NCBI GenBank assembly: GCA_965603825.1
Contig: CBFDEM010000055.1
Coordinates: forward strand, 1 to 64,000
DNA from: Blepharisma stoltei ATCC 30299
Lineage: Eukaryota; Protista; Ciliophora
Reading direction: 5' to 3'
Length of the DNA stretch: 64,000 bases
The notes below the pieces were generated by a model. The model saw only the letters and a program-made list of their open reading frames with translations, made no database searches and was not told the origin of the DNA. A program made the position numbers and the translations under genes. This document shows positions 4,485-20,605 of the stretch, piece after piece (positions within the stretch are counted from its first letter, which is position 1; the number at the start of each line of letters is the position of its first letter).

Positions 4485-6065
4485 TTAGAATTTAATTATG
4501 CTTTTCTTGTTAAGGTCAAACTTATATCAATAATTTTTAACATCACTGCACTCAGACTTATCATAAGGCTTATTATAACTATATGTAGTTATGAATTTTA
4601 AATAAAGTGCTCCATCATTATACACACTATATTTTAAATGCATCCACTCTTTCGGTGTTTTTCCAATTTTAAATCAATTATATTCATTATTTTCCTCACA
4701 TTCAAAAATTGATCCAAATAATTCGAATATATATACTCTGGAGCCATAAGAAACTAGGTATCTTGATCCTGAAAAATATAAATCTGAATATAGGATCAAG
4801 GAGAAACTGTCTATTAATAAATCAAACTTCATTATTATTCTTCAGTAATTTGTGGAGTATATAATGCTTTTATTGAATAAAATCATATTACTATAACACA
4901 TTTCTGATTGTATTTTATATTTATTCATAGTATTTTTTAATAAATTATGTTTGCATAAAACCCATGATCTTGGTTCATTTTTAGGATTTTGAAGGGAATA
5001 AACCGTACTGTCATAATACACAAATGAGCATGGTGGAATTAATTTATTAGTAGGGTTTTTCAATATCGGCATAAATTGTGAATTTGCGAAAATTTCTTCA
5101 TCGTAGCTTTTAATTTTTTTCTCTGAGAGATAAAAACGATTTCGTAATAAAAATAAATTAGTTAGGGAATTCGAAATCTGACTGTCTATTAAAATCGATA
5201 ATAAACAATTCTGAATATAATCTAGATTGAAAAAGGAATAATTCATTAAAATTTTATATCCCTTACGAATTGGCAATAAAAATTTCCTTAATGCTTTTTC
5301 TAGCTGAGACATACAATTTTGCAATCAATCAACCCATATACTTTCAATCCGTAATGACTCTAAGCAGCCAATTGTTTTATTATAAATATTAGTGGATTCC
5401 TCAACATACCCCTCATATTTTGATTTAAATCAGCTGCTTATTAGACAGAATCTATTTATTTCGTTAATAGTGCCAATCCCTAGTTGAAAGGGTAGAAGGT
5501 ATTTTTGGATTTTTTGCTTAATTTCTTCAAATGTAGAGTCGTATTTAAGCTCACAAAGCTTATTATCTTGAATAAATTGAAATTCATTTTTTACTTGAAT
5601 TGGAATTTCAGAGATTATTTTATTTATTTTATCGAGCAAGAAATTAATTCTGAAATAAGCCCAGCAGTAATTTGTGCATTTTTCTCTTATTTTCTGAGTT
5701 TTCTCCATTATATCTCATATAAGTAAATCTAAATTTCTCACACTTTTAGCTTCTAAAGCTGATTGAAACATTTCCTTAATTTTTTCTATTCCTTTGTCAA
5801 TTTCCTTAGGACCGTTGTAATCCCATTTATCTGGGTCTATAGTGATTCCTTGAATTTTTAGTTTTTTCTTTTCAAGCTCATTTTTTTCATTCAGAAGGAC
5901 TTCAAGGACTGCATTGATTTCATGCAGACTTTCGTGTTCTTTATTACAATCCTTGAGATGAGAATCGAAATGAGTAGCACAGAAAAAACTACCTGATGAT
6001 AAATAATTGCAAATATATATAACTTTAGAGCGGCAGGTTGGGATAAAACACTTATAAGCTTCCAT
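4485..6065 (-). CDS. Subtelomeric family copy 1 (contiguous, 526 aa): Cys/His-rich N-terminus, helical middle, degenerate kelch/beta-propeller-like C-terminus
   Basis: ORF-track pieces 5715-6065, 5430-5708 and 4842-5324 are in one frame, separated only by TGA. The frame continues to TAA at 4485-4487 (1581 nt, 527 codons). N-terminus is C-x4-C..C..C-x2-H-x3-H; C-terminus includes KFDLLIDSFS...GSIFECEENNEYNW...YKFDLNKKSIIKF. The fold assignment is tentative. Confidence 0.85.
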
Positions 6066-6912
6066 TCTACAAATATATAAAATGTCTTAATATCAAGAAA
6101 ACTTAATAGATAATAAAATCTCACATAAATTTATATTGTTCATCAAAATTTACATTCCTAAACAATAAAGCGACTACATTTAGTAGCATTTCAAAACCTA
6201 TACTATTACAAATAATGATGAAACCAGAATAAAGCTGGCTAATTTATCAGGGCTAAAGCGCATCAAGCTTTTTAAAATTCAAAACTCATAGTTTTCTTAA
6301 GATTCAAAAATGATCCAAAGCTTTCTCATATATATGATATGGAATTATGAGAAACAAGAAATTTTGCATCAAATATTTAGATCCCATTTCCCCAAGCTCT
6401 CCAAGCCCTCTCAAAAACCCTACTTATGATTGATAGAAAGAAATACTGAAGATACTGCAGTATATTAATTTCTGCATCATTCTAGAGCAATTTGTAGTAT
6501 AGTTTCTGATAAAAACTCTATCTCTTGGCAGTGGAATAAGATACTTTTGGGAAAAATTAACTATTTTATCAAGTTTTGCTTATATTTTGTATTAATAATT
6601 AAATGAATTTATTAGATTTATATAAAAATGAATTATTAAGAATTTTAAAACTGCTAGGCATGCTAATTGATCATAATTAATGCTTAAATATATCTTTACG
6701 GCTATTCAATTCTTTGACTTTATTTACGAATGACCCATTCAATTTGACTAATCAGATATTACTTGGTATATTCATGTTTAAGAGTGAGACCTATTAATCT
6801 AGGTTATTGAGCATAATTATAAACTTTATTAGATTAATAAATCTCGATATAATTATTAAAAAAAATATAAATATTAAAATTCTAAATTTTATGTTCTAAA
6901 ATAAACGCTTCA

Positions 6913-8648
6913 TTATAATTTAATTAAGCTTTTCTTGCTAAGGTCAAATTTAAACCAATCACTTTTCTTGATTTTATAATCTATTCTTTCTCCACTATAA
7001 TAAAAGTATATACCCTTCTTATCGAGAATACTTGGGATATCCTCGTCATCAAATAGAGTATCGATTTTGAAATAAAATGCTCCTTCATGATAGACACTAC
7101 ATTTCAAAATATTTCAATTATTATTTGTTTTCCCAATTTCGGACCAAATATATTCATTATTTTCCTCACACTCAAAAATTGATCCACAATTTTCTATTAT
7201 ATATGCTCTGGTATCATAAGAAACTAAGATTATTTTCGACCATACGTGAAAAGTCAATGGCAACTCTAATGCTTTGTCTCCATAACGTTGGCCAACTCAA
7301 ATTTCATATGCAGAAGTGTAAATACTGTACGGGAGAGCTGAAATTCAGTCACCTTAGCTTCTGGCAAAATTGCCTCAGCATAAGAACCCAGTATCAAGAT
7401 AGGAGTATAAGACAAAATCTAATTCACAAGAAAACCTCCGTGGGAGAGCTAAACTTTCTGTTTCAGCAAACTTTCCACTGAGCTGGTATATTTGTTTTAG
7501 AGTGACGACTCCATAAAATTTTTTGGTCCACCCACTCTATCAGGAGTGCATCTCAAAGCCACTATTCCATGAATGCCGCCATTTATTTTATAAGAAACTA
7601 AAATCTTCCACCCCTGGAGTTCAGAATCTGAGTATGTAATCGTAGAGCAACTGTTTATTAATAAATCGAATTTCACTATTTTTCTTTTATTTTCTAAGAA
7701 GGCAATAATGCTTTTATTGAAAAAAGCCAATTGATTATTTCAATTATTAACTCACATAAATTCATATTTATTCAGTGTATTTTTTACCAAATCATACCTG
7801 CATAGAAAATCTAATCAACATTTATTTTTATTATAATCGTAAGTACCTTTTTTAATAAAATAAATAGCATTTTCATAGTACAAAAACTGGCCATTCATAA
7901 GTTTATTATTCGGACTTTTCAATAATGACATCAACTGAGAATTTGCAATAATTTCTTCATAATCCTTAATTTTGTCATAAATTTGATTGAAAAACGACTT
8001 AAGATCTCTATATAAAATATATGAATTTGTTAACTCACGTAAAATATTATCAAAAATATTGAACTCAGTTTTTCAAAAGTATTCGTATTGCTCATTCTTA
8101 GTATAAATTCTGCTTTGTAAATATTTACTAAAAATTGAATTTTTATCTTTTACTAAAATAACTGATAAAAAATACATAGCATTAGTAAATAAGGGACTTG
8201 ATGAAGAGAATGAAATTTTTAACAATCCTTGCAAGGTTTGCAGCATAGGCATGCAATTTTCTAAAAAATCGATCAATTTGATTTCATTTTGTAATAACTC
8301 TAAGCGCTCAATCGCTTTCTTATAAATTTTATTGCATTCCTCAACATACTCCTCATATTTTGATTTAAGTCAGCTGCTTATTAGACAGAATCTATTTATT
8401 TCGTTAATAGTGCCAATCCCTAGTTGAAAGGGTAGAAGGTATTTTTGGATTTTTTGCTTAATTTCTTCAAATGTAAAGTCATTTTTTAGCTCATAAAACT
8501 TATTATCTTGAATAAATTGGATTTCATTTTCTACTTGAATTGGAATTTCAGACATTATTTTATTTATTTTTTCAAACAAAAAATCAATCCTGAAATAAGC
8601 CCAGCAGTAATTTGTGCATTTTTCTCTTATTTTCTGAGTTTTCTTCAT
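6913..8648 (-). CDS. Subtelomeric family copy 2: lacks the N-terminal module, interrupted by a 374-bp insert (453 aa if the insert is removed)
   Basis: Open with TGA=W from ATG 8648 to ILVSY. It then enters the insert (TAA at 7497). Removing 7216-7589 gives LVSY-DTRAYIIENCGSIFECEENNEY..., colinear with copy 1, to TAA at 6913. Confidence 0.75.
7216..7601. mobile_element. 374-bp insert bounded by a 12-bp direct repeat ATAAGAAACTAA (IES-like or TSD-flanked insertion)
   Basis: Repeat at 7216-7227 and 7590-7601. The empty site in copy 1 has a single ATAAGAAACTA at 4746-4756. No terminal inverted repeats seen. Confidence 0.8.
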
Positions 8649-9146: not shown

Positions 9147-11615
9147 CTAAAATAAATGCTGCATTTCGAATTTAATTAAACTTTTCTTGTTAAGGTCAAA
9201 TTTATATCATTCTTCTTTGATTTCGTAGGATGTTCAACTCTCATAAATATTATCCTCCATATCAATAATATCCTTATGACTATTATAAAAATAAACACCC
9301 TTCATATCAAATTTAATTTTACTATGGATTTTGAAATAAAATGCTCCATCATTATACACACTGCATTCCAAATTATCTCAGTGATAATTTGTTTTCCCTA
9401 TTTCAGACCAAATATATTCATTATTTTCCTCACACTCAAAAATGGATCCATAATTTTCAAATATATATGCTCTGGTACCATAAGAAACTAATGCTGGCCA
9501 ACTCAAACTTCATATACCGAAGTTTAAATACTGCAAGGGGAGCTAAAATTCAATCATCTTAAGCTTCTTGCAAAATTCCCTCTGCTAAGGAAACAGATAA
9601 TCATGATAAGACAAAACCTAATTCACAAGAAAACCTCCGTGGGAGAGCTAAACTTTCAGTTTCAGCAAGCTTTCCATTGAGCTGGTCTATTTGTTTAAAA
9701 GCGATTTTACCAAAAATCTTTCTAGTCTATCCTCTCCATAAGGAGTGCACCTCAAAACAACTATTCCATGAATGCCATCATTAATTTTATAAGAAACTAA
9801 AAACTTTCACCCCTTGAATTTATTATCTGAATATGTAATCATAGAGTAACTGTCTATTAATAAATCGAATGTCACTATTTTTCTTTCATTTTCTACCAAA
9901 GCAATAATGCTTTTATTGAAAAAAGCCAATTTATTTTCTATTTTATTAATTCTCATAAATCAATATTTATTCAAGGTATTTTTTACCAAATCGTATCTGC
10001 ATAGAAAATCTAGTGAATCTTTATTTTTATCGAAAGTAGCATCTTTATAAAAATAAATAGCATTTTCATAGTACAAAAATTCGTCATTAATGAGTTTATT
10101 ATTTGGGCTTTTCAATAATGACATCAATTGCGAATTTGCAATAATTTCTTCAAAATAGTTAATTTTGTCCAGTTTCAAATACTTTTCATTAAAAAACCGC
10201 TTATATTTTCTATAAAAATCCTTATGTAAACTATATGTTCCCTCTTGTAATAAAAAATTATCAAAAACATTGACTTCAGGAATCTTGCCACTTAAAAAAA
10301 ATCTGTTTTGCTCAGTTTCAGTATAAAAGCTTTGCAAATACTTTTGTTTAATATTACTAAAGATTGAATTTTTTTCTTTTACTAAAATCAATGACCAAAA
10401 ATACAGGATAAATTTTTCAGTATAGTAATCAATAGAAAATTTATTTGAACCTAATTCTAACAATTCTAGTAAGGGTTGCAGTTTAGACATGCAATTTTCT
10501 AATCAATCTATCCGTATGCTATCATTTTGTAATAACTCTAATCGCTCAATCGTTTTCTTATAAATTTTATTGCGATCCTCAACATACTCCTCATATTTTG
10601 ATTTAAATCAGCTGCTTACTAGACAGAGCCTATTTATTTCATTAATAATGCCAATCTCTCTCTGTAAGGGCAAAATGCATTTTTGAAAATTTTGCTTAAT
10701 TTCTTCAAATGTAGACTCGTTTTTAAGGTCATAAAACTTATTATCTCGAATAAATTGAAATTTATTTTCTACTTTAACTGAAATTTCTTTATTTATTTTT
10801 TCATACCAGAGATTAATCCTGTAATAAACCCAGCAGTAATTCGTACATTTTTCTCTTATTTTCTGAGTTTTCTTCATCATATCTCATATAAAAAGGAAGA
10901 AAAATTAACCAGAGTCATAGAAACAAACAGCTTCCTAGTTATTTAGATCAATATTTTTTATGATACCTGTTTAAAGATGCTTAATTAATTGAACATAAAT
11001 ATTTGTCAGAGATAAGTTTATTATAAATATTATGTAAAAAATAGACATTGGATAATATAAAACCTTTCTTGTTCTACTTCTTTTACATTATACATATTTA
11101 ACAGTCGATAAAAAGGGGTGTTTACCGATTATAAAAGACTGTATAATAATTATAATTTTCTGAATATGGGCATGAGTCAATATTCTGTCAGACTTTAAAT
11201 ATCTTTATTAAAAGCATAAAAATACCTTCAAAACTTTTTATAATAAATAATAATTAGGATTATCTCATATAAGTAATTCTAAATTTTTTGCACTTTTAGC
11301 CTGAAGTGCTAAAAGGAATATTTTGCTAATTTTCTCTATTCCTTTGTCAATTTCTTTAGGACCGTTGTAATTTCACTTATCTGGGTCGATAATTATTTCT
11401 TGAATTTTTAGTTTTTTCTTTTCAAGCTCAATTTTTTCATCCAAAAGCATTTCAAGGATTGCAATTATTTCATGAAGACTCCTGTGCTCTTTATTACAAT
11501 CTTTGAGATGAGAATCGAAATGGGTGGCACAGAAAAAATTGCCTGATGATAAATAATTGCACATATATAAAACTTGAAAGGGGCAGGCTGGGATAAAACA
11601 CTTATAAGCTTCCAT
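9147..11615 (-). CDS. Subtelomeric family copy 3: full length (592 aa) only after removing two inserts (381 and 309 bp)
   Basis: ATG 11615 (MEAYKCFIP) runs to ELLIWD, then insert A, MMKKTQK..., FLVSY, insert B, GTRAYIFENYGSIFECEENNEY... and TAG at 9147. 2469-381-309=1779 nt (593 codons), with no TAA/TAG when TGA=W. Confidence 0.8.
9480..9800. mobile_element. 309-bp insert bounded by ATAAGAAACTAA direct repeat, homologous to the 374-bp insert in copy 2
   Basis: Repeat at 9480-9491 and 9789-9800. Internal sequence is shared with 7228-7589 (e.g. aattcacaagaaaacctccgtgggagagctaaacttt). Contains an in-frame TAG at 9687. Confidence 0.8.
10880..11272. mobile_element. 381-bp AT-rich insert bounded by a 12-bp direct repeat TATCTCATATAA
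   Basis: Repeat at 10880-10891 and 11261-11272. Deleting the insert recreates the copy-1 junction (5711-5722) and the frame LLIWD-MMKK. An in-frame TAA lies inside the insert. Confidence 0.8.
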
Positions 11616-12042
11616 TCTATAGATTTCATTATCACATAGATAGCAATTTTTTTAATATTAAAAAAATTCGTTTACTCACAGAGGAAAATTTTACTTCTTT
11701 TTTTGGTTGAAATTAACTAAAGTCAATATTTAATGTCGTAAAATCGAATGATAATGCATGGATTTTTCATTTTACTAGAACCTCAATTTATAGGATATTT
11801 ATTTTATAATAATCTCTTTATTCCCAATTTTTTGGCCTAATTTTCAGACATTAGCAGAAAGAAAATTTCAATGAAGAGATATTAATCTTTAATAGATAAT
11901 AAACTTTTATAAAATAGTCTTCATCTAGATATGCAAATTAAGACATCCGAAGCTCTACGTTTTGAATAAATTCAATTATATAAATTAAATAAGACTAAAA
12001 AAATAATGAATTTATTTAAACCCATTTTAAACCTTGTAATAG

Positions 12043-12264
12043 CTAGCAACCCTTCAATCTCTTAAAGGCAACGATACGGCAATTGTTAACAAGCCCTAAC
12101 TGTTCTAAAGTAAATCCAATTTCTTCTGACAAATGTCGATTTTTATAAATCACATCAAGTTCAAGTTCGTTGCTCCCAAGCATCTCCGCTAAAATGCTTC
12201 GAAAGTGAGCAAGTTTCCACAATCTGTTTACTTGTATTTTTGCGCTTTTAATAATAAAATGCAT
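12043..12264 (-). CDS. Ubiquitin-like protein (73 aa) ending RLKGC
   Basis: MHFIIKSAKIQV...DVIYKNRHLSEEIGFTLEQLGLVNNCRIVAFKRLKGC-TAG parallels ubiquitin LIFAGKQLEDGRTLSDYNI..LHLVLRLRGG in both length and pattern. The start codon is inferred. Confidence 0.65.
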   Translation of the reverse strand: MHFIIKSAKIQVNRLWKLAHFRSILAEMLGSNELELDVIYKNRHLSEEIGFTLEQLGLVNNCRIVAFKRLKGC

Positions 12265-12506
12265 AAGAAAGGAATCTGCTCTCTCTAAGAGTGATATGGA
12301 GGTTAAGATCAACTAATAAAATTTCTTTCAATTATCGAATTTCAGAATTTAAAGTGATTAAATGAAGGTGCTCTGGATAATAAAATATCCCAAAAAGTAT
12401 GAAAACTAAAAGCTTATTGGAAAGGGCATTGATATCAATATTTTGAAAATTAATTAATATCTTGACCATATAACACCACTATAAATCATAATTAAGAGTT
12501 TTTTAA

Positions 12507-13629
12507 TTATTTATGAGAGATCACGTAAAAAGCTAGATATGCATGTGACATGTCAATAGATTGTAAGCTAGCATTTCTTGTTATGAGATCATTATATTCA
12601 GTCCAATTATTCGTATCCCATGTATATGCTATAAAATGTCTTCTATAATCGCATATTAAGCCATACAGCTTGTAAGTATAATATTCTGTATGTGTTCACG
12701 AATGCTTGCAGGTCATTTATATTCTGTTTTAATTAACTATAGATCAACGACCATGAATAATAGGTAGCAATTATTTTCTCGCGATTTTTCCCTGAAGACT
12801 ATTCTTGGGAACTATTTGGCTCAGTAAAAAGCTTTTTATCGAATAATGTCTAATAAGAAAAATCTTAGCCAAATGTCGCAGATGGAGAGTTAGAAAGAGA
12901 AAATGTCGTGGAGGAAAAGACATACAGCCAAATAAAAGTAATCTTATTGAATAAAATAGCTATAATCCCTTCAATATTTAATTCTTCATTAATCTCTATT
13001 CTTCTATTATTATGAGATGGGAAATAAAAGGAAATTGTAGATGGCCAATCAATACCCTCAGTCTCAATAGTAATATCTCTAGGTTGATCGCACCTTTCAC
13101 AATATAATTTATTATCGCCATAGAAAATTTTTGGCTCTCTAAGATTTTCTAAAGTATCTTGTATCGAATTGCAGTTATTCCTTGGGACTACAATAGATTC
13201 TGATATTTCATTGCATTTTGTAATGCTCGAACAAGCATGGCAGATAAAATGGTTTTCAAAAGTTATTGAAAATGAAGTATCATTACATAAATCTGATAAC
13301 TTACCCATAATAACTGCCATCACTTCTTTAGGGTCGTTAAAATTGGGAATACTAAACTATGTAAACATTACCATTGGGAATTCTGCGTTAACCTGGTTTA
13401 TAAATAATCTCACAAGTTGCTTTATATTGCCAGACCCAGGATTTCTAATACTAGATAATAGTGATGATAGAGTAGACAATAATCTATTTTCCGTATGCTG
13501 AATTTTCTCACAAAATTCATTATTGCTTGCAAGAATTTGCAAAAATGAATTAAGATAGCATGTATTTTCTATGTTTGGAATCCCTGATTTTATTCTATCA
13601 TATATCAGCGAACGATTTATAGATATCAT
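12507..13629 (-). CDS. Minimal USP (peptidase C19) deubiquitinase, 273 aa, with a 15-nt intron (13357-13371) and a 286-bp insert (12677-12962)
   Basis: Cys box GIPNIENTCYLNSFLQIL and zinc-finger pairs CHAC/CERC. The His-box segment YKLYGLICDYRRHFIAY...WTEYND...AYLAFY lies at 12507-12676 and is missed by the ORF track. Removing intron and insert leaves 822 nt in frame. Confidence 0.85.
12677..12964. mobile_element. 286-bp TA-bounded IES-like insert
   Basis: TA at 12677-12678 and 12963-12964. Inward-reading ends are TATAATATTCT and TATAGCTATTT. Excision leaving one TA gives ELNIEG-ITYKLYG in frame. Confidence 0.75.
13357..13371 (-). other. 15-nt spliceosomal intron (USP)
   Basis: GTAATGTTTACATAG; splicing removes an in-frame TAG. 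Confidence 0.9.
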
Positions 13630-14275: not shown

Positions 14276-17200
14276 TTAATCTTCATCAAAAACAATATCT
14301 TTATCATGCTTCGGTACCACAAAATAACTGTTCAGCGATCTCCCTGTCGGCTCATATTTTACCACTTTATTGAAATCATAATCAAACCTCCCAGGTGCCT
14401 GTCCTTCAATAATTGCCTTAGCTATTTCACTTACATTAATTTTCCCAGCAAACCCATTGCTTTCCATTTTGTTCGCGATATCATTATCTGGCCCATAAAT
14501 ATCATATCTCACTATATTTGTCCCCGTAATCCCAGCTATAACTTCTCCCGTATGAATCCCAATTCTCATATTTAAATTTATTTTTTTGCTTTTATTTACC
14601 CTTTTGATAGCTTTTATCATATCCAAAGCCATTTCTAGGACATTAAGACACTCTGAAGGTGGGTCTCTATTTTCTCCATCTGTAAAGCCTAAGATTACAT
14701 AGCAGTCTCCTATTGTATGAACTTTATATACATTGTGTCGGACACAGAGGTGGTCAAAAATAGAAAAAAGCTTAGAAAGCATAGAGACTACGTCGATTGG
14801 GTCTTTATCAGAAGACCACATTGTAAATCCTACAATATCAGCATAAAGAATGGTAACATCATAATACCTATCAGTAGTTGTGACATCGTTGTGTAGGTTT
14901 CTTAAAACTTGAGGAGGGATCATTTGATTTAAGAGCTTTTCTGTGTTCTTTATTTCTCTTTGAGCACGCTTGTTTAGATTATAAGCTTTTCTTGATTGTC
15001 ATTCTGTTATAAAGCTAATTATAGCGTTAATAGCAAAAAATGCTAAAATAAGCAAAGTTGACTGGACAGCCATAAATTCATCCACATTGCTCATAGACAC
15101 AATACAAATCCAATGCCCTGCATTAATAACAGTTGCAAACAAAATATACCCAAATGGCAGCCCACTAATATGGTTAATCACTAAATTTGTATACATAATC
15201 TCCAACGCCACCACATTTATAAAATAGCTCGGCATTGTTGCAATGGAAACTGCACTCAGCAAGCTCTCAATTATATAAAGCAACATAACAGCCCATGGAA
15301 ATAATGAAGATTTATAAACGTTTTTAAATACCGAAACCAAATAAAACATAGTCGCCAAACATGCAAATCTCAGAACAATTTCTGGGATAGACCCTTGGTT
15401 CCTATCAAGAATAAAAGCTGTAATAAAAATAATGGTCCGAATGGTATATGTGGTAATAGTCAGTCACAGCCCATAAATTAGTCCTTTTAGGTCTCTTTCA
15501 ATGCCAGACAGTCTGAAATCTTTTTGGATATCAGTTTCTTTAAAGCTGCAAACTAGCCATTCTACAGGCCCGACAAGCTCTAAATCACTGTCTTCTTGTG
15601 AGGTTAAATCAGCAAGCTCGAATTTTTGGGCTGCTTTTGTGGTCTCATCTTCTATAGTGATTTGTTGGGTTTGCATTCTTTTGTCCTCAGCCATTAATGG
15701 CTCTATACTTTTGTCGATAGCGTCTATGGAGTCTTCACCGTTCCATTTGCTACTGCTTCCTCCTAAATATACAGCCCGCCTTGTTTTCCGTCTAGCTTTT
15801 TGATTGTCTACTATAAAAGTGTTTAAAAGCCCTTTGCCTTTGGCTTCAACTTTATTAGGAATAAAATTATATTTGGTGTGGTCTCTGATAAAATTATAAG
15901 TTTCTGATGAAATTTGTATGGAATCGGGGGTTTTTAAGGTAGAGCACATTCTTGAGGCGGTATTTACAGTGTCTCCGACTAAGGAAAACTGAGGTTTATG
16001 CTCTCCTACGACTCCAGCAATAACTGAGCCAGTGTTTATTCCGATTTTCACTTGCAGTTTGTGCCCATTTTTAAGTGAAACTGGTTCAAGTTTTTGTAAA
16101 ATTTTGATAGCAGCTTCTAAGCACCTTTCAGCATGATTAAGTTTCAGCTGTTTTGTAGAGAGACTAGCTTCACTATCAGCTAAGCCTCCACAGATCACAT
16201 AAGTTTTATTAACAGTTTCTATTTTGGTAACACCTAATTTTTCGCATAGCCCATCCAGCATAACAAAAAATTTGTCAAGAAGTTCTAATAGCTCATTAGG
16301 TGATAATGATGAACAAATTTTATCAAAATCATATATATCACAAAATACCACAGTGACGCTGCTTTGTTTTTCAGCAATATATCTCACTCCTTCTTTTACT
16401 CTATCTTTTACAAAATTTGGCAATAAATTACTCAAGATGTCTTGGCCTTTTTGGAATTGAAATTCCAGCTTTCGCTGAAACACAAATTCTTCACGGGCAA
16501 ACTTTTCTAGTAAATACCCTACATATGTACTGACTAAAAAAATCCCTATAGAAAGCACTGCATAATTAAATAAAATAATCAAAGCATCCCTGACGTCTTC
16601 ATCTAAGGAATACATAATAGCCATATACACCAAATAAGCAAATAAGAAAATTGCATTTATGATACAAATTTTGTAGTTCCCCACGTTGAATATAAAGAAA
16701 TTTAAGGTTATAACCAGAGCTGTGCTTAATGAGGAATCATAATGATAGAAAACTTCATGGACAAACTTAAACAGCAGATAAGATGCTACAAATGCAAGGA
16801 TTCATACATCAAATTGCCTTATAAACGATTTTCTAGTGGAAAACCATAAAATAAAAAAGCATAGGCATAGTAAAACACTGTAAGAGACGACAACTCCAAT
16901 ATTCCCTGTATTTGAGATAATTACATACAATTCGAAGGCAATACCTAATATAATGATAAGTCTTGCGAGAGCTGTCATAAATTTTGTGATTCTTTGAATT
17001 ATATGAGTTTTGTAGGTTTTTTCGACGTAGGGGTGCTTGAATTGGAGGAAAATGTTGTGGAAGGCATAGTAGTCGTGGTCTTCGTCTTCATTAGCACCCA
17101 TATCGACATTTTTGGGGATGAAAACTTTGTTGAGACAGTCTGCATATTCTTTGACCCTCATAAGGACGAGCTTAGTTCTGTTTTTGGACCTCATTTGGTA

Positions 17201-20200
17201 TCTTTTACTGGGGGCAACTTTGGAATTTTTCACTATTAAAGAATCAGCCTTGGTGGGGTACCACAACATTCCTATATACTTAACAGTAATATAATGAATG
17301 GCGTTAATAACTGGAACCATCATCATACTCACAATATAATACGGAAAATAAAATGTCTTTGTTGAAATTCCCCACATAATATAATTTCCATACCCACTAT
17401 AATCATACCAAAAAATCAGTGGATAAAACAATAGGATGCTCACCCCAGAAGTCCAAAAAAACAGTCAAGTCCAATCATAAGATTCCACTGTAATTACATA
17501 ATTGACCGTTTTTATAGCTATTGCAAATGCTACAACTCCTGTAATATCTAAAGACTGTGGAAACCCATCAACAGTAATCGCATTTACAACAGCCCCATAC
17601 ATGAACCCAAATAGTATTCCACTATGTACAACAGCGAACATAGACCACCTTATAAATCACCGAAGATTGAATTTTCGCTTATAAATGCCATCTGTATAGA
17701 GGACTGGGCGATTTATTATTACTTCTTTACTAAGATCTCTGTCAAGACTGCCTACAATTACGATAGGAAGAGAAGTGAAAACGACGTTGTAGAGAGTCAT
17801 AAGGAAGGAGTCATAAAAGGAGGTGCCGCTGAAGAGATTTATAAAGCTGAAGTAGAAGTTGGGGAGAACTAGCATAAAATTTTTGTAAAATGAGTATAAG
17901 ATAACCTTGGAAACTCTGTTATAGTTTCATCTGCCGTGAATAAGTAGCAAGGGGACTAAATAAGCAAATCTTGCGATTACATACTCGCTAGCATTTGCAG
18001 CCTGCATACCTTCTTTGCCACAGATCCCAACACCTATATGAGCTTCTTGGATCATAGAAACGTCATTAGCCCCATCTCCTATAGCAAGAGTCATAGGCTT
18101 AAATGCTAATCTTTTTTTGACTATTTTTACAAGCTCTGATTTCTGTAATGGGGTAACTCGGCACAAAATGACTGCATGGCATAAGCTAGCAAGCATCATA
18201 AAGTATTTTACAGTAATGGGGTCATTAATTATAAACCCCAAAGCTCGGCCGTCAACTACTAAGCCTATGTTCAGGCTTTCTAAATTTTTTACCTTTAAGT
18301 CCCCTTCAAACATCTCTCCATCATCAGGAATTACTTGATACCTTGTGTTTTTCCTTGTATGATTGTGGTTGATGGTATTTCCAGGTGTATTATCAGTGAC
18401 ACACCTTATTTTATTAAGTACGCTGTTATGACGGTTTTTCTCACCTTTTACATATCTTGCTAAATGTGCCTTAATAAGCCCTCTTGATTCCTCTAAGGTA
18501 TTTGCAGCAATTTTAATAATATCCATATCAGGCTGCAATAATTTGCATGAATAGCCTATATTTACAGCTGTTTCTGTCCTATCTCCTGTTAACACCCATA
18601 CTTTGATTCCTCCCTCCATAAGTGTTTCTATAGCTTCTGGGACTCCTTCTTGAATTTTATCTTCAACAGCCGCAGCCCCTATCAAATCCATATCTTTTTC
18701 AAACTCTTCAGCAAGCTCATAAAGCCTTGCTGCCTTATCAGAAAGGGCATTTTTAGCTGTATTATATCGGATTTGATAGTCATTGGCTTGCTCCATCGTT
18801 AGTTCACGGCGTCCTAATACAAAAGTCCTAAGACCAGATAAAGAAAATTCATCAAGATGCTTATTAATAGTAATAATGTCTTGAGAAGACCCTAAGCAGC
18901 GCTCAAGCATGACACTATCCGCACCTTTACAAAGCAAAATCACGTTTCTATTCCTTTCACTCATAGGCTCTACTACAATTGACATACGTTTTCGTTCTGA
19001 ACTAAATTCATTTATCCCTAAAATCCTGTATTCTAAGGTTTCTCCATTGATTCTTAAAGAAATTGAGCTGTCTTTGTAGCCTATTAAAGAATAACCAAAA
19101 CAATGTGCAGCTATTACTAATGCCTCTTCATCAGGAGAAGCAGCCTGATATATTGGCTCCCCATCAAAATCAAAATCTGGGGTAACCGTATTACAGAGCG
19201 CTAAAAGTTCAAAGAAATCTCCAATTTCTTTTTTCCCTTTGGTTTGCATATCTTCTAACAAATCTGGGTCCCAAAATTCAAATTTTTTGTGAGGATTTAC
19301 TTGACATTTTTGAAATCTTTCGTTTTCTTGGTTAAATCCATAAGATTTTCCTTTAATAGAGCACATTTTAAATTCCATAACATTTTCTGTCAAAGTCCCA
19401 GTTTTATCAGTAAAAATATACTCGATTTGTCCTAAATCCTCATTTAAATCCCCAGTTTTTACTGAAGCAGGCATATCTGTTTCATCATAATACATCGAAT
19501 TATCTCACTGGATAAGCTTTGATTGGACTGCTTTTACAATATCAAGAGTAATATATAAAGAAATAGGAATCAAGCTATTATAAAGAATCAAAAAAGTAAT
19601 AAATGATATTGGTGATAATTCATATGTAGACCCTGAAAAGTAGCTGAATTGGTCTGAGTTTGAATATGACTGGGTCATATAAATTGCGGTGTCGAGGAAT
19701 GCAATTGCAAAGAGAAAAGTGAAAATTATTGTAAGATAACTGTTTATTTTTTTCTCAAGGTTGCTCACTTTATGAGGAGGATGCTTTGAGTTTTTCATTA
19801 ATTTTGTGTCATTTCCAGTAAAAACGACCAAACCAATTATTCATGGAGTGTTTTTTAGTGTGCTGCTTTGCAAAATCATATTTCCTAAATATACAGGAGT
19901 TGCTCGGGGATAGCCTTTTAGCTTAAGCCACCCTTCAAAAGAGTGCAGCCTATTATTTGGCTGTTCAGTTTTTAAAACCCCATCTTCAATTATATGCATA
20001 TTTTTCATAGCCTCAATCGGTGTGGTTCCTTCCATTACGCTCGAAATTTCATTCAAGCATTTTTTAAGTTTCAAACTTTCTTCTCCATCCAGACTTGTCG
20101 TTTCTACATAACATACTTTTTCTCTATGCCCTGAAGCCAATAACATTATATCAGCAGGGACATGGACTTCTCCTTCCAGCAGCACAATATTCCCCACTCT

Positions 20201-20605
20201 CAAATCCATTCATTTCACATCCTCAAATTTCCCAGTTGTGTGCTCCCATTTCTTAGTAATTCTATTATTGATTTTCCTATCCATTGCGTGTCTTCGGTAA
20301 TCCAAATACCCATCTTTGAATAGTGAGACGGATAAGATAAAAGAAAGAGGCGCAATTGTAGCCCAATTTGCAGTAGGAGATAAATTAAAGGGTAAAAGCT
20401 GGCAAATTGAGACTATTAAAAATCAAATATTCGCGACTCTGTTGAACTGCTCGAATAAGTTTTTTGGGACTCAGGACAAAATTGTGTATTTTCCTGATGA
20501 AATAAAATTGTTGGGGAATGCTGTGGGCTCACAAGCTAGGCCGCTTTCGATTTTTATTTGTCGGAATTCTGCAGAGGAACTGTCAATAAATGCTGCATCT
20601 GCCAT
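14276..20605 (-). CDS. P4-ATPase (flippase)-guanylyl cyclase fusion, alveolate type, 2109 aa
   Basis: One frame of 6330 nt with at least 10 TGA=W codons. ATPase motifs: NFISSGKYT, LDGE, DKTGTLTEN, SPDEEALV, KGADS, TGD, GDGANDVSMI. Two TM blocks plus two class III cyclase domains: KIETV...QFSLVGDTVNTASRM and ADIVGFT...HTIGDCY...RYDIYG. Confidence 0.95.

Follow-up and report, generated by a model that had tools for sequence, protein, structure and literature searches.

How a gene for a USP/UCH deubiquitinase comes to be interrupted, in the somatic genome of a ciliate, by a segment with the appearance of an IES is the question raised by a locus near one end of the window, the stretch of 64,000 nucleotides analysed here. 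The window belongs to the somatic (MAC) assembly of Blepharisma stoltei ATCC 30299, which comprises 41.46 Mb in 64 contigs (MAC genome paper, PMC9942806). Its 5' end is made of about 3.1 kb of CCCTAACA repeats, the broken USP gene sits 9.5 kb from the telomere, and TGA is read as Trp in the genes of the window. The parts of the locus are the following:

13372 to 13629, minus strand: USP exon 1, 86 amino acids, with the Cys box IENTCYLN (Pfam UCH, E 7.4e-6, above the curated cut-off)
13357 to 13371, minus strand: 15-nt GT..AG intron, at the same position in paralogs
12964 to 13356, minus strand: first part of USP exon 2 (2a), 131 amino acids, fingers region, last residues ELNIEGI (43-47% identity to the C11 and C15 paralogs)
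13291 to 13292: site of an excised TA-bound germline IES of 119 bp (MAC+IES assembly GCA_914767885)
12677 to 12964: retained IES, 286 bp plus one duplicated TA, 31% GC, non-coding, unique in the MAC genome
12954 to 12964, minus strand: insert end motif TATAGCTATTT, matching 8/8 specified positions of TAT Agn nnt TT
12677 to 12687, plus strand: insert end motif TATAATATTCT, matching 6/8 specified positions of TAT Agn nnt TT
12865 to 12867, minus strand: premature TAA within the insert
12507 to 12677, minus strand: second part of USP exon 2 (2b), 56 amino acids, with the His box HFIAY, YND and its own TAA (52% identity to the paralog His box, E 2e-17)

On the minus strand, the USP frame starts at 13629, reaches ELNIEG at about 12967, continues through 32 amino acids of the insert and ends at the TAA of 12865-12867, with the His box beyond. 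The run past ELNIEG into the insert and the stop there had been described in the first-pass annotation, whose coordinates proved exact. That annotation did not contain the 15-nt intron at 13357-13371, which is needed for joining the Cys box to the remaining USP gene, and the intron was likewise overlooked in the published annotation, where the gene (12507-13629) is split into three models of 90, 151 and 69 amino acids. In our homology searches the pieces of the gene were queried separately, with no joined model, and TA deletions were enumerated for the frame check only. A word search for homologs, limited by length and therefore uninformative on absence, gave only the window's own protein. The Cys box, the His and the Asn/Asp of the USP family (PF00443) are all present, but on pieces that lie apart in the ATCC 30299 MAC; the paralog exon 2 that aligns with the His piece matches Pfam UCH positions 85-254. 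The order of Cys box, His box and Asn-Asp is that of known USP/UCH deubiquitinases (Pfam PF00443; PDB matches USP47, USP21 and USP8), whereas the family found here is lineage-specific, fast-evolving and expanded, and the protein consists of the catalytic domain only, 273 amino acids in three pieces. The somatic copy in ATCC 30299 encodes a USP without His and Asp, and the neighbouring IESs are removed. The predicted product of the retained form is a 249-amino-acid protein with a hydrophobic tail and without the catalytic His/Asp.

The limits of the insert follow from comparison with its paralogs. It is flanked by TAs at 12677-12678 and 12963-12964, with 286 bp between them. The closest paralogs, C11 and C15 (68% DNA identity), are continuous at this point and have one TA there; in both, the upstream flank ends and the downstream flank starts on this common TA, which sets the size of the insert as 286 bp plus the duplicated TA. 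A TA direct repeat with one copy at the empty site is thus seen in two paralogs and, as a 286-bp TA..TA joint, in the sequencing run X12 described below. The pair 12677/12963, between which the first-pass annotation had placed the excision, is the only nearby TA pair whose removal is collinear with the paralogs, and precise removal of the 286 bp brings back the USP coding frame. Other TA boundaries were rejected, as several keep the frame but bring in 9-30 unrelated residues.

Read inward, the ends of the insert are TATAGCTATTT and TATAATATTCT, and the Blepharisma end consensus quoted in the first-pass annotation is borne out by the published one, TAT Agn nnt TT, which is given for IES classes of about 153 and 174 bp, the insert measuring 286 bp (PMC9942856 SI). 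Against this consensus the two ends score 14/16, a value that random TA pairs of the window reach in 0.04% of cases, while 37 sampled real TA-bound IESs nearby score at most 13/16. Since both TAs are intact and the ends score so high, an end defect is not visible, and a broken end is not supported as the cause of retention.

Several other identities were considered for the insert and set aside. A spliceosomal intron is rejected by the absence of GT near the 5' junction and by a length of 286 nt, compared with 15-16 nt in Blepharisma. BogoMITE and BstTc1 MITIES are characterized by a TAA/TTA or TATA target duplication together with a C-rich terminal inverted repeat of 30-38 bp; the insert has neither C-rich ends nor a long terminal inverted repeat, and it does not match the sampled BogoMITE IESs. 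A palindromic or MITE structure was also rejected, as the inverted repeats are short and not co-centred. The insert has no Rfam match at E values up to 1, no second copy was found in the MAC genome, and no similarity was found to 43 sampled germline IESs, BogoMITEs among them. At 12737-12742 the insert contains CTATAG, which reads TATAG both ways and would divide it into parts of about 62 and about 224 bp, like two adjacent IESs; the chance expectation is about 0.1.

The descent of the insert can be approached through the same paralogs. Comparison with the published IES annotation and with paralogous empty sites, as proposed in the first-pass annotation, bore fruit: the C11 paralog has a published 109-bp TA-bound IES at exactly the homologous TA, which is excised in the same strain. 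In the MAC+IES region of the C15 paralog the homologous TA is empty; both paralog regions of GCA_914767885 were reached via neighbouring genes. Published TA-bound IESs occupy about 0.8% of TAs, which puts the probability of such a coincidence at about 1.6% for the two paralogs tested. In addition, the 119-bp IES at 13291 occupies a TA homologous to that of a 130-bp C11 IES, which shows that IES positions were inherited through the USP/C11 duplication. Internal similarity was not detected between the 286-bp insert and the 109-bp C11 IES, and likewise not between the 119- and 130-bp IESs, a real pair; this is as expected for old elements. The link to a germline-limited element is thus one of position, and on that comparison the insert is very probably an old TA-bound IES by descent, one that would predate the split from the C11 paralog.

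Whether the window is somatic at all bears on how the presence of the insert is understood. Relative to the window, the published MAC+IES assembly GCA_914767885 has 19 extra germline IESs between 3.6 and 19.8 kb, and their absence from the window upholds the early view that it is somatic. Within the USP gene itself, the 119-bp TA-bound IES at 13291 was removed 330 bp from the 286-bp insert that was kept. The loss of the one and the persistence of the other exclude both a simple carry-over of germline DNA and a regional block of excision. A zone without excision near the telomere was also considered and rejected, as the annotation gives eight published IESs in the interval from 6.8 to 13.3 kb as excised, of which the one at 11619 is doubtful.

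In ATCC 30299 the insert is present in all of the assembled DNA. In X1, possibly the source run, one contig of 1594 bp spans it at flank depth, and in the contigs of run X7 it is present and similarly unbranched. No excised ATCC molecule is found among the contigs of X1 and X7, which drop minority forms, the known form with the 119-bp IES being missing from them as well. Instead of being absent from the MAC of its own strain, the insert is part of the MAC reference and of the X1 and X7 contigs; it is a retained, not a working, IES in ATCC 30299. In run X12, which comes from another B. stoltei sample of the same study, diverged by about 5%, a 939-bp contig skips exactly 286 bp, with TA at both ends. 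Its depth of 68.7 is like that of the flanks, and further contigs reach the next gene, which identifies it as the syntenic allele. The X12 sample is probably strain HT-IV: no B. stoltei strains other than ATCC 30299 and HT-IV are mentioned in the papers, and it was total DNA that was sequenced for HT-IV. We infer that the element was excised in the X12 strain; a precise germline loss would give the same picture. The initial description of the insert as a "retained or inefficiently excised IES" is therefore well supported in its first term, on account of the paralog IES, the empty form in X12 and the ends, and without support in its second, no excised contig having been found in ATCC 30299, whose contigs miss minority forms.

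The gene that carries the insert belongs to a USP-like family with at least 50 matches in the genome, several copies of which are broken. Its Cys box in ATCC 30299 has E (codon 13567-13569), three residues before the catalytic Cys, where 13 other Cys boxes of the family and the second strain have G. Among residues common to X12 and both paralogs, four are changed in ATCC 30299, including this G-to-E replacement, versus one in X12, a difference that is not significant (P 0.19). A comparison of the two strains over the 137 codons listed in full gives 20 non-synonymous and 4 synonymous changes (dN/dS about 1.2), and there is no stop among the codon changes listed. The net frameshift is 0 over about 820 coding bp, versus about seven indels in 850 flanking bp (P 0.003-0.02, a contrast that the AT-rich flanks may inflate). 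Both lines thus kept the frame under constraint until recently, which implies that the ATCC lineage once excised the element. A run that is presumably RNA yielded one contig of the ATCC allele (12526-12716, depth 3.2) that continues into the insert, and no RNA-type contigs were seen over exon 1 or 2a. Low expression is also suggested by the published annotation, which misses the USP intron even though introns were found from RNA-seq. Expression of the gene looks low, and the gene is probably dispensable, so that the biological effect of this single case is likely to be small.

How the insert came to be retained is best explained, with slightly better than an even chance in our judgment, at the level of the MAC, by an excisable germline IES, a past failure and a neutral state of retention, with no regulated switch. 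The C11 IES at the same TA, the seamless X12 allele, the intact ends and the frame constraint all support this reading. BPgm, the putative PiggyBac-type excisase, would have failed on the 286-bp element in one past MAC development, the germline element remaining an excisable IES. Selection would not have acted against retention, given a gene that is weakly expressed, redundant and already drifting. The IES-plus form might then have been fixed by amitotic assortment over decades, the strain having been cultured for more than 50 years, and/or it might have been kept by scnRNA subtraction against a parental MAC already holding the insert. Blepharisma is known from the literature to have scnRNA-like 24-nt RNAs, and maternal inheritance of retention in this genus is not reported in the literature searched.

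The insert could also be the same old IES whose germline allele in ATCC 30299 lost excisability in cis, so that it is now MAC-destined DNA in a newly dead gene. Candidate causes of such a loss are growth from about 110 to 286 bp, the internal TATAG at 12737-12742 acting as a competing end, and a weakened left end. This alternative, which we regard as possible but the less likely course of events, would agree with a retention that looks complete in ATCC 30299 and with the excess there of changes at conserved residues, Cys box included (four to one, P 0.19), and Paramecium offers documented cases of IESs recruited into exons (PMC3464196). Against it stand two intact TAs, ends that outscore those of neighbouring IESs with efficient excision, a length of 286 bp that is nothing unusual (median 255) and a reading frame still intact on either side of the insert.

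It is unlikely that, instead, a non-autonomous TA-targeting element entered a favoured TA independently, in ATCC 30299 only, and was never recognised for excision, in which case the other strain would have the ancestral empty allele. Although the insert differs in length from the paralog IES and is unlike it internally, and the C15 paralog lacks an IES at the homologous TA, such an event would have to strike a second time at a TA where a paralog has an IES, for which the chance is about 0.8% per site. Moreover, the insert shows no terminal inverted repeat beyond TATA, no second MAC copy and no match to the 43 sampled germline IESs, including the BogoMITEs.

The first-pass annotation had proposed that the element acts as an on/off switch for the enzyme, and this found no support. 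A programmed, selectable switch would turn the enzyme off by retention and on by excision according to the clone, as in Paramecium mtA/mtB, with the two strains being of opposite mating type. The somatic IES state does differ between the two strains (mating types 1 and 2 if X12 is HT-IV), and excision-based switches are known in Paramecium (PMC7900874), but mating type is confounded with strain. The size of the family, with at least 50 members and several broken, the dN/dS of about 1.2, the altered Cys box and the RNA-type contig that runs into the insert all speak against a regulated gene, as does the absence of RNA contigs over exon 1 or 2a. Further retained inserts lie in unrelated decaying neighbours, and we consider a switch very improbable. 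Hardly any credence is left for an assembly artefact, in which germline (MIC) reads would have leaked into a low-coverage contig end: the site is indeed 9.5 kb from the telomere, with a depth of 32 versus 61 on one long contig elsewhere (X1), but the 119-bp IES 330 bp away and 18 others nearby are absent from the window, the single 1594-bp X1 contig spans the insert at flank depth, and the idea is already largely refuted.

The insert resembles the TA-bound, non-periodic IESs of Blepharisma (Seah et al., 2023; PMC9942856) in having a TA repeat, a precise intragenic position, an ordinary length, ends of the TAT Agn nnt TT type and a published IES at the same place in a paralog. Unlike them, it is part of the MAC reference, which explains why it is missing from the published insert set, whereas the MAC retention scores of true IESs do not exceed 0.02; it also falls outside the 153/174-bp class behind the consensus. 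With the "cryptic IESs" of Blepharisma (PMC9942856 SI) it shares the condition of a TA-bound segment in the MAC reference. In contrast, those are MAC-destined DNA mistakenly cut in about 5% of reads, while here excision restores a gene and the segment is IES-derived; no deleted form was found among the ATCC contigs, which miss minor forms. The Blepharisma literature describes cryptic IESs and partly excised retrotransposons, and no report of an IES retained, or differentially retained, at the strain level was found in the literature searched.

In Paramecium, IESs that are excised in one species can be part of the MAC in another, about half of them in coding sequence (PMC3698930), and retained IESs concentrate in weakly expressed genes, differ by stock and are partly heritable (PMC8670300). 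The present insert is like these differentially excised or exon-recruited IESs (Catania, 2013, PMC3698930; Arnaiz, 2012, PMC3464196; PMC8670300), in which one lineage excises what another has in its MAC, commonly within coding sequence and in genes of weak expression, and in which retention varies by stock. It differs in belonging to another ciliate subphylum, in occurring within one species and in having the support of an IES at the same TA of a paralog. As in the mtA/mtB mating-type rearrangements of Paramecium (PMC7900874), gene activity is set by a TA-bound segment in the MAC. There, however, excision of functional DNA silences a single essential gene with a linked phenotype, whereas here retention silences a single copy among at least 50 paralogs and has no known phenotype.

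The retained-IES type of editing failure is thus already known from Paramecium. What this locus adds is that the somatic Blepharisma reference contains true gene-breaking IESs beyond the reach of the listing by the published pipeline and that, with X12 taken as HT-IV, two mating-compatible B. stoltei strains differ in somatic IES state. The value of the case is as a marker for testing maternal control in a heterotrich, and a switch is not demonstrated. The locus is a natural, SNP-tagged marker for the transmission of retention from parent to progeny via the 24-nt scnRNA-like pathway, because the published crosses of ATCC 30299 with HT-IV bring each allele together with an old MAC that either contains the insert or is free of it. 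A broader proposition is that Blepharisma has heritable, MAC-templated IES epialleles, this and other hidden ATCC elements being excisable and kept because the parental MAC holds them. It appears rather doubtful; if true, the state of the deubiquitinase, on or off, would depend on the cytoplasmic parent in a cross to HT-IV, maternal control of IES excision would have been shown for the first time beyond the oligohymenophorean models, and existing conjugation data could be read allele-specifically.

The surroundings of the insert show other irregularities. The X7 contigs break at its left junction, at 12654-12684, with depth rising inward (35, 47, 64), which is not an excised joint and is possibly an alternative telomere addition site. 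At 12238-12288, 220 bp downstream of the USP stop, two forms occur in the ATCC runs. The form of the window has a depth of 17 in X1, and the second, which has about 320 different bases, connects to the main X1 contig, while X7 contigs leave the window at the TAA of 12286-12288; the site is possibly a partly retained TAA-bound IES absent from the published set. At 11619, a published 62-bp "IES" without terminal repeat seems to be part of the main X1 contig, a loose end of which matches its first bases, and this segment may have been retained or collapsed in the MAC assembly. Three inserts of 381, 309 and 374 bp, at 10880-11272, 9480-9799 and 7216-7600, have exact direct repeats of 11-12 bp and disrupt copies of an orphan family. 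The intact member of that family (4485-6086) has single repeats at both sites, with no published IES there.

The gene next to the USP gene (14276-20605) encodes a P4-ATPase/guanylyl cyclase fusion of 2109 amino acids, ordinary for alveolates. Elsewhere in the genome, close USP paralogs broken by stops or frameshifts lie in C8 at about 242 kb and in C18 at about 550 kb, the C18 copy also having E for G in its Cys box. The USP paralogs in C15 (about 657-675 kb) and C11 (about 1152-1166 kb) are clustered with E2 enzymes, a ubiquitin-like protein and an E1 enzyme, which suggests co-duplicated arrays of ubiquitin-pathway genes.
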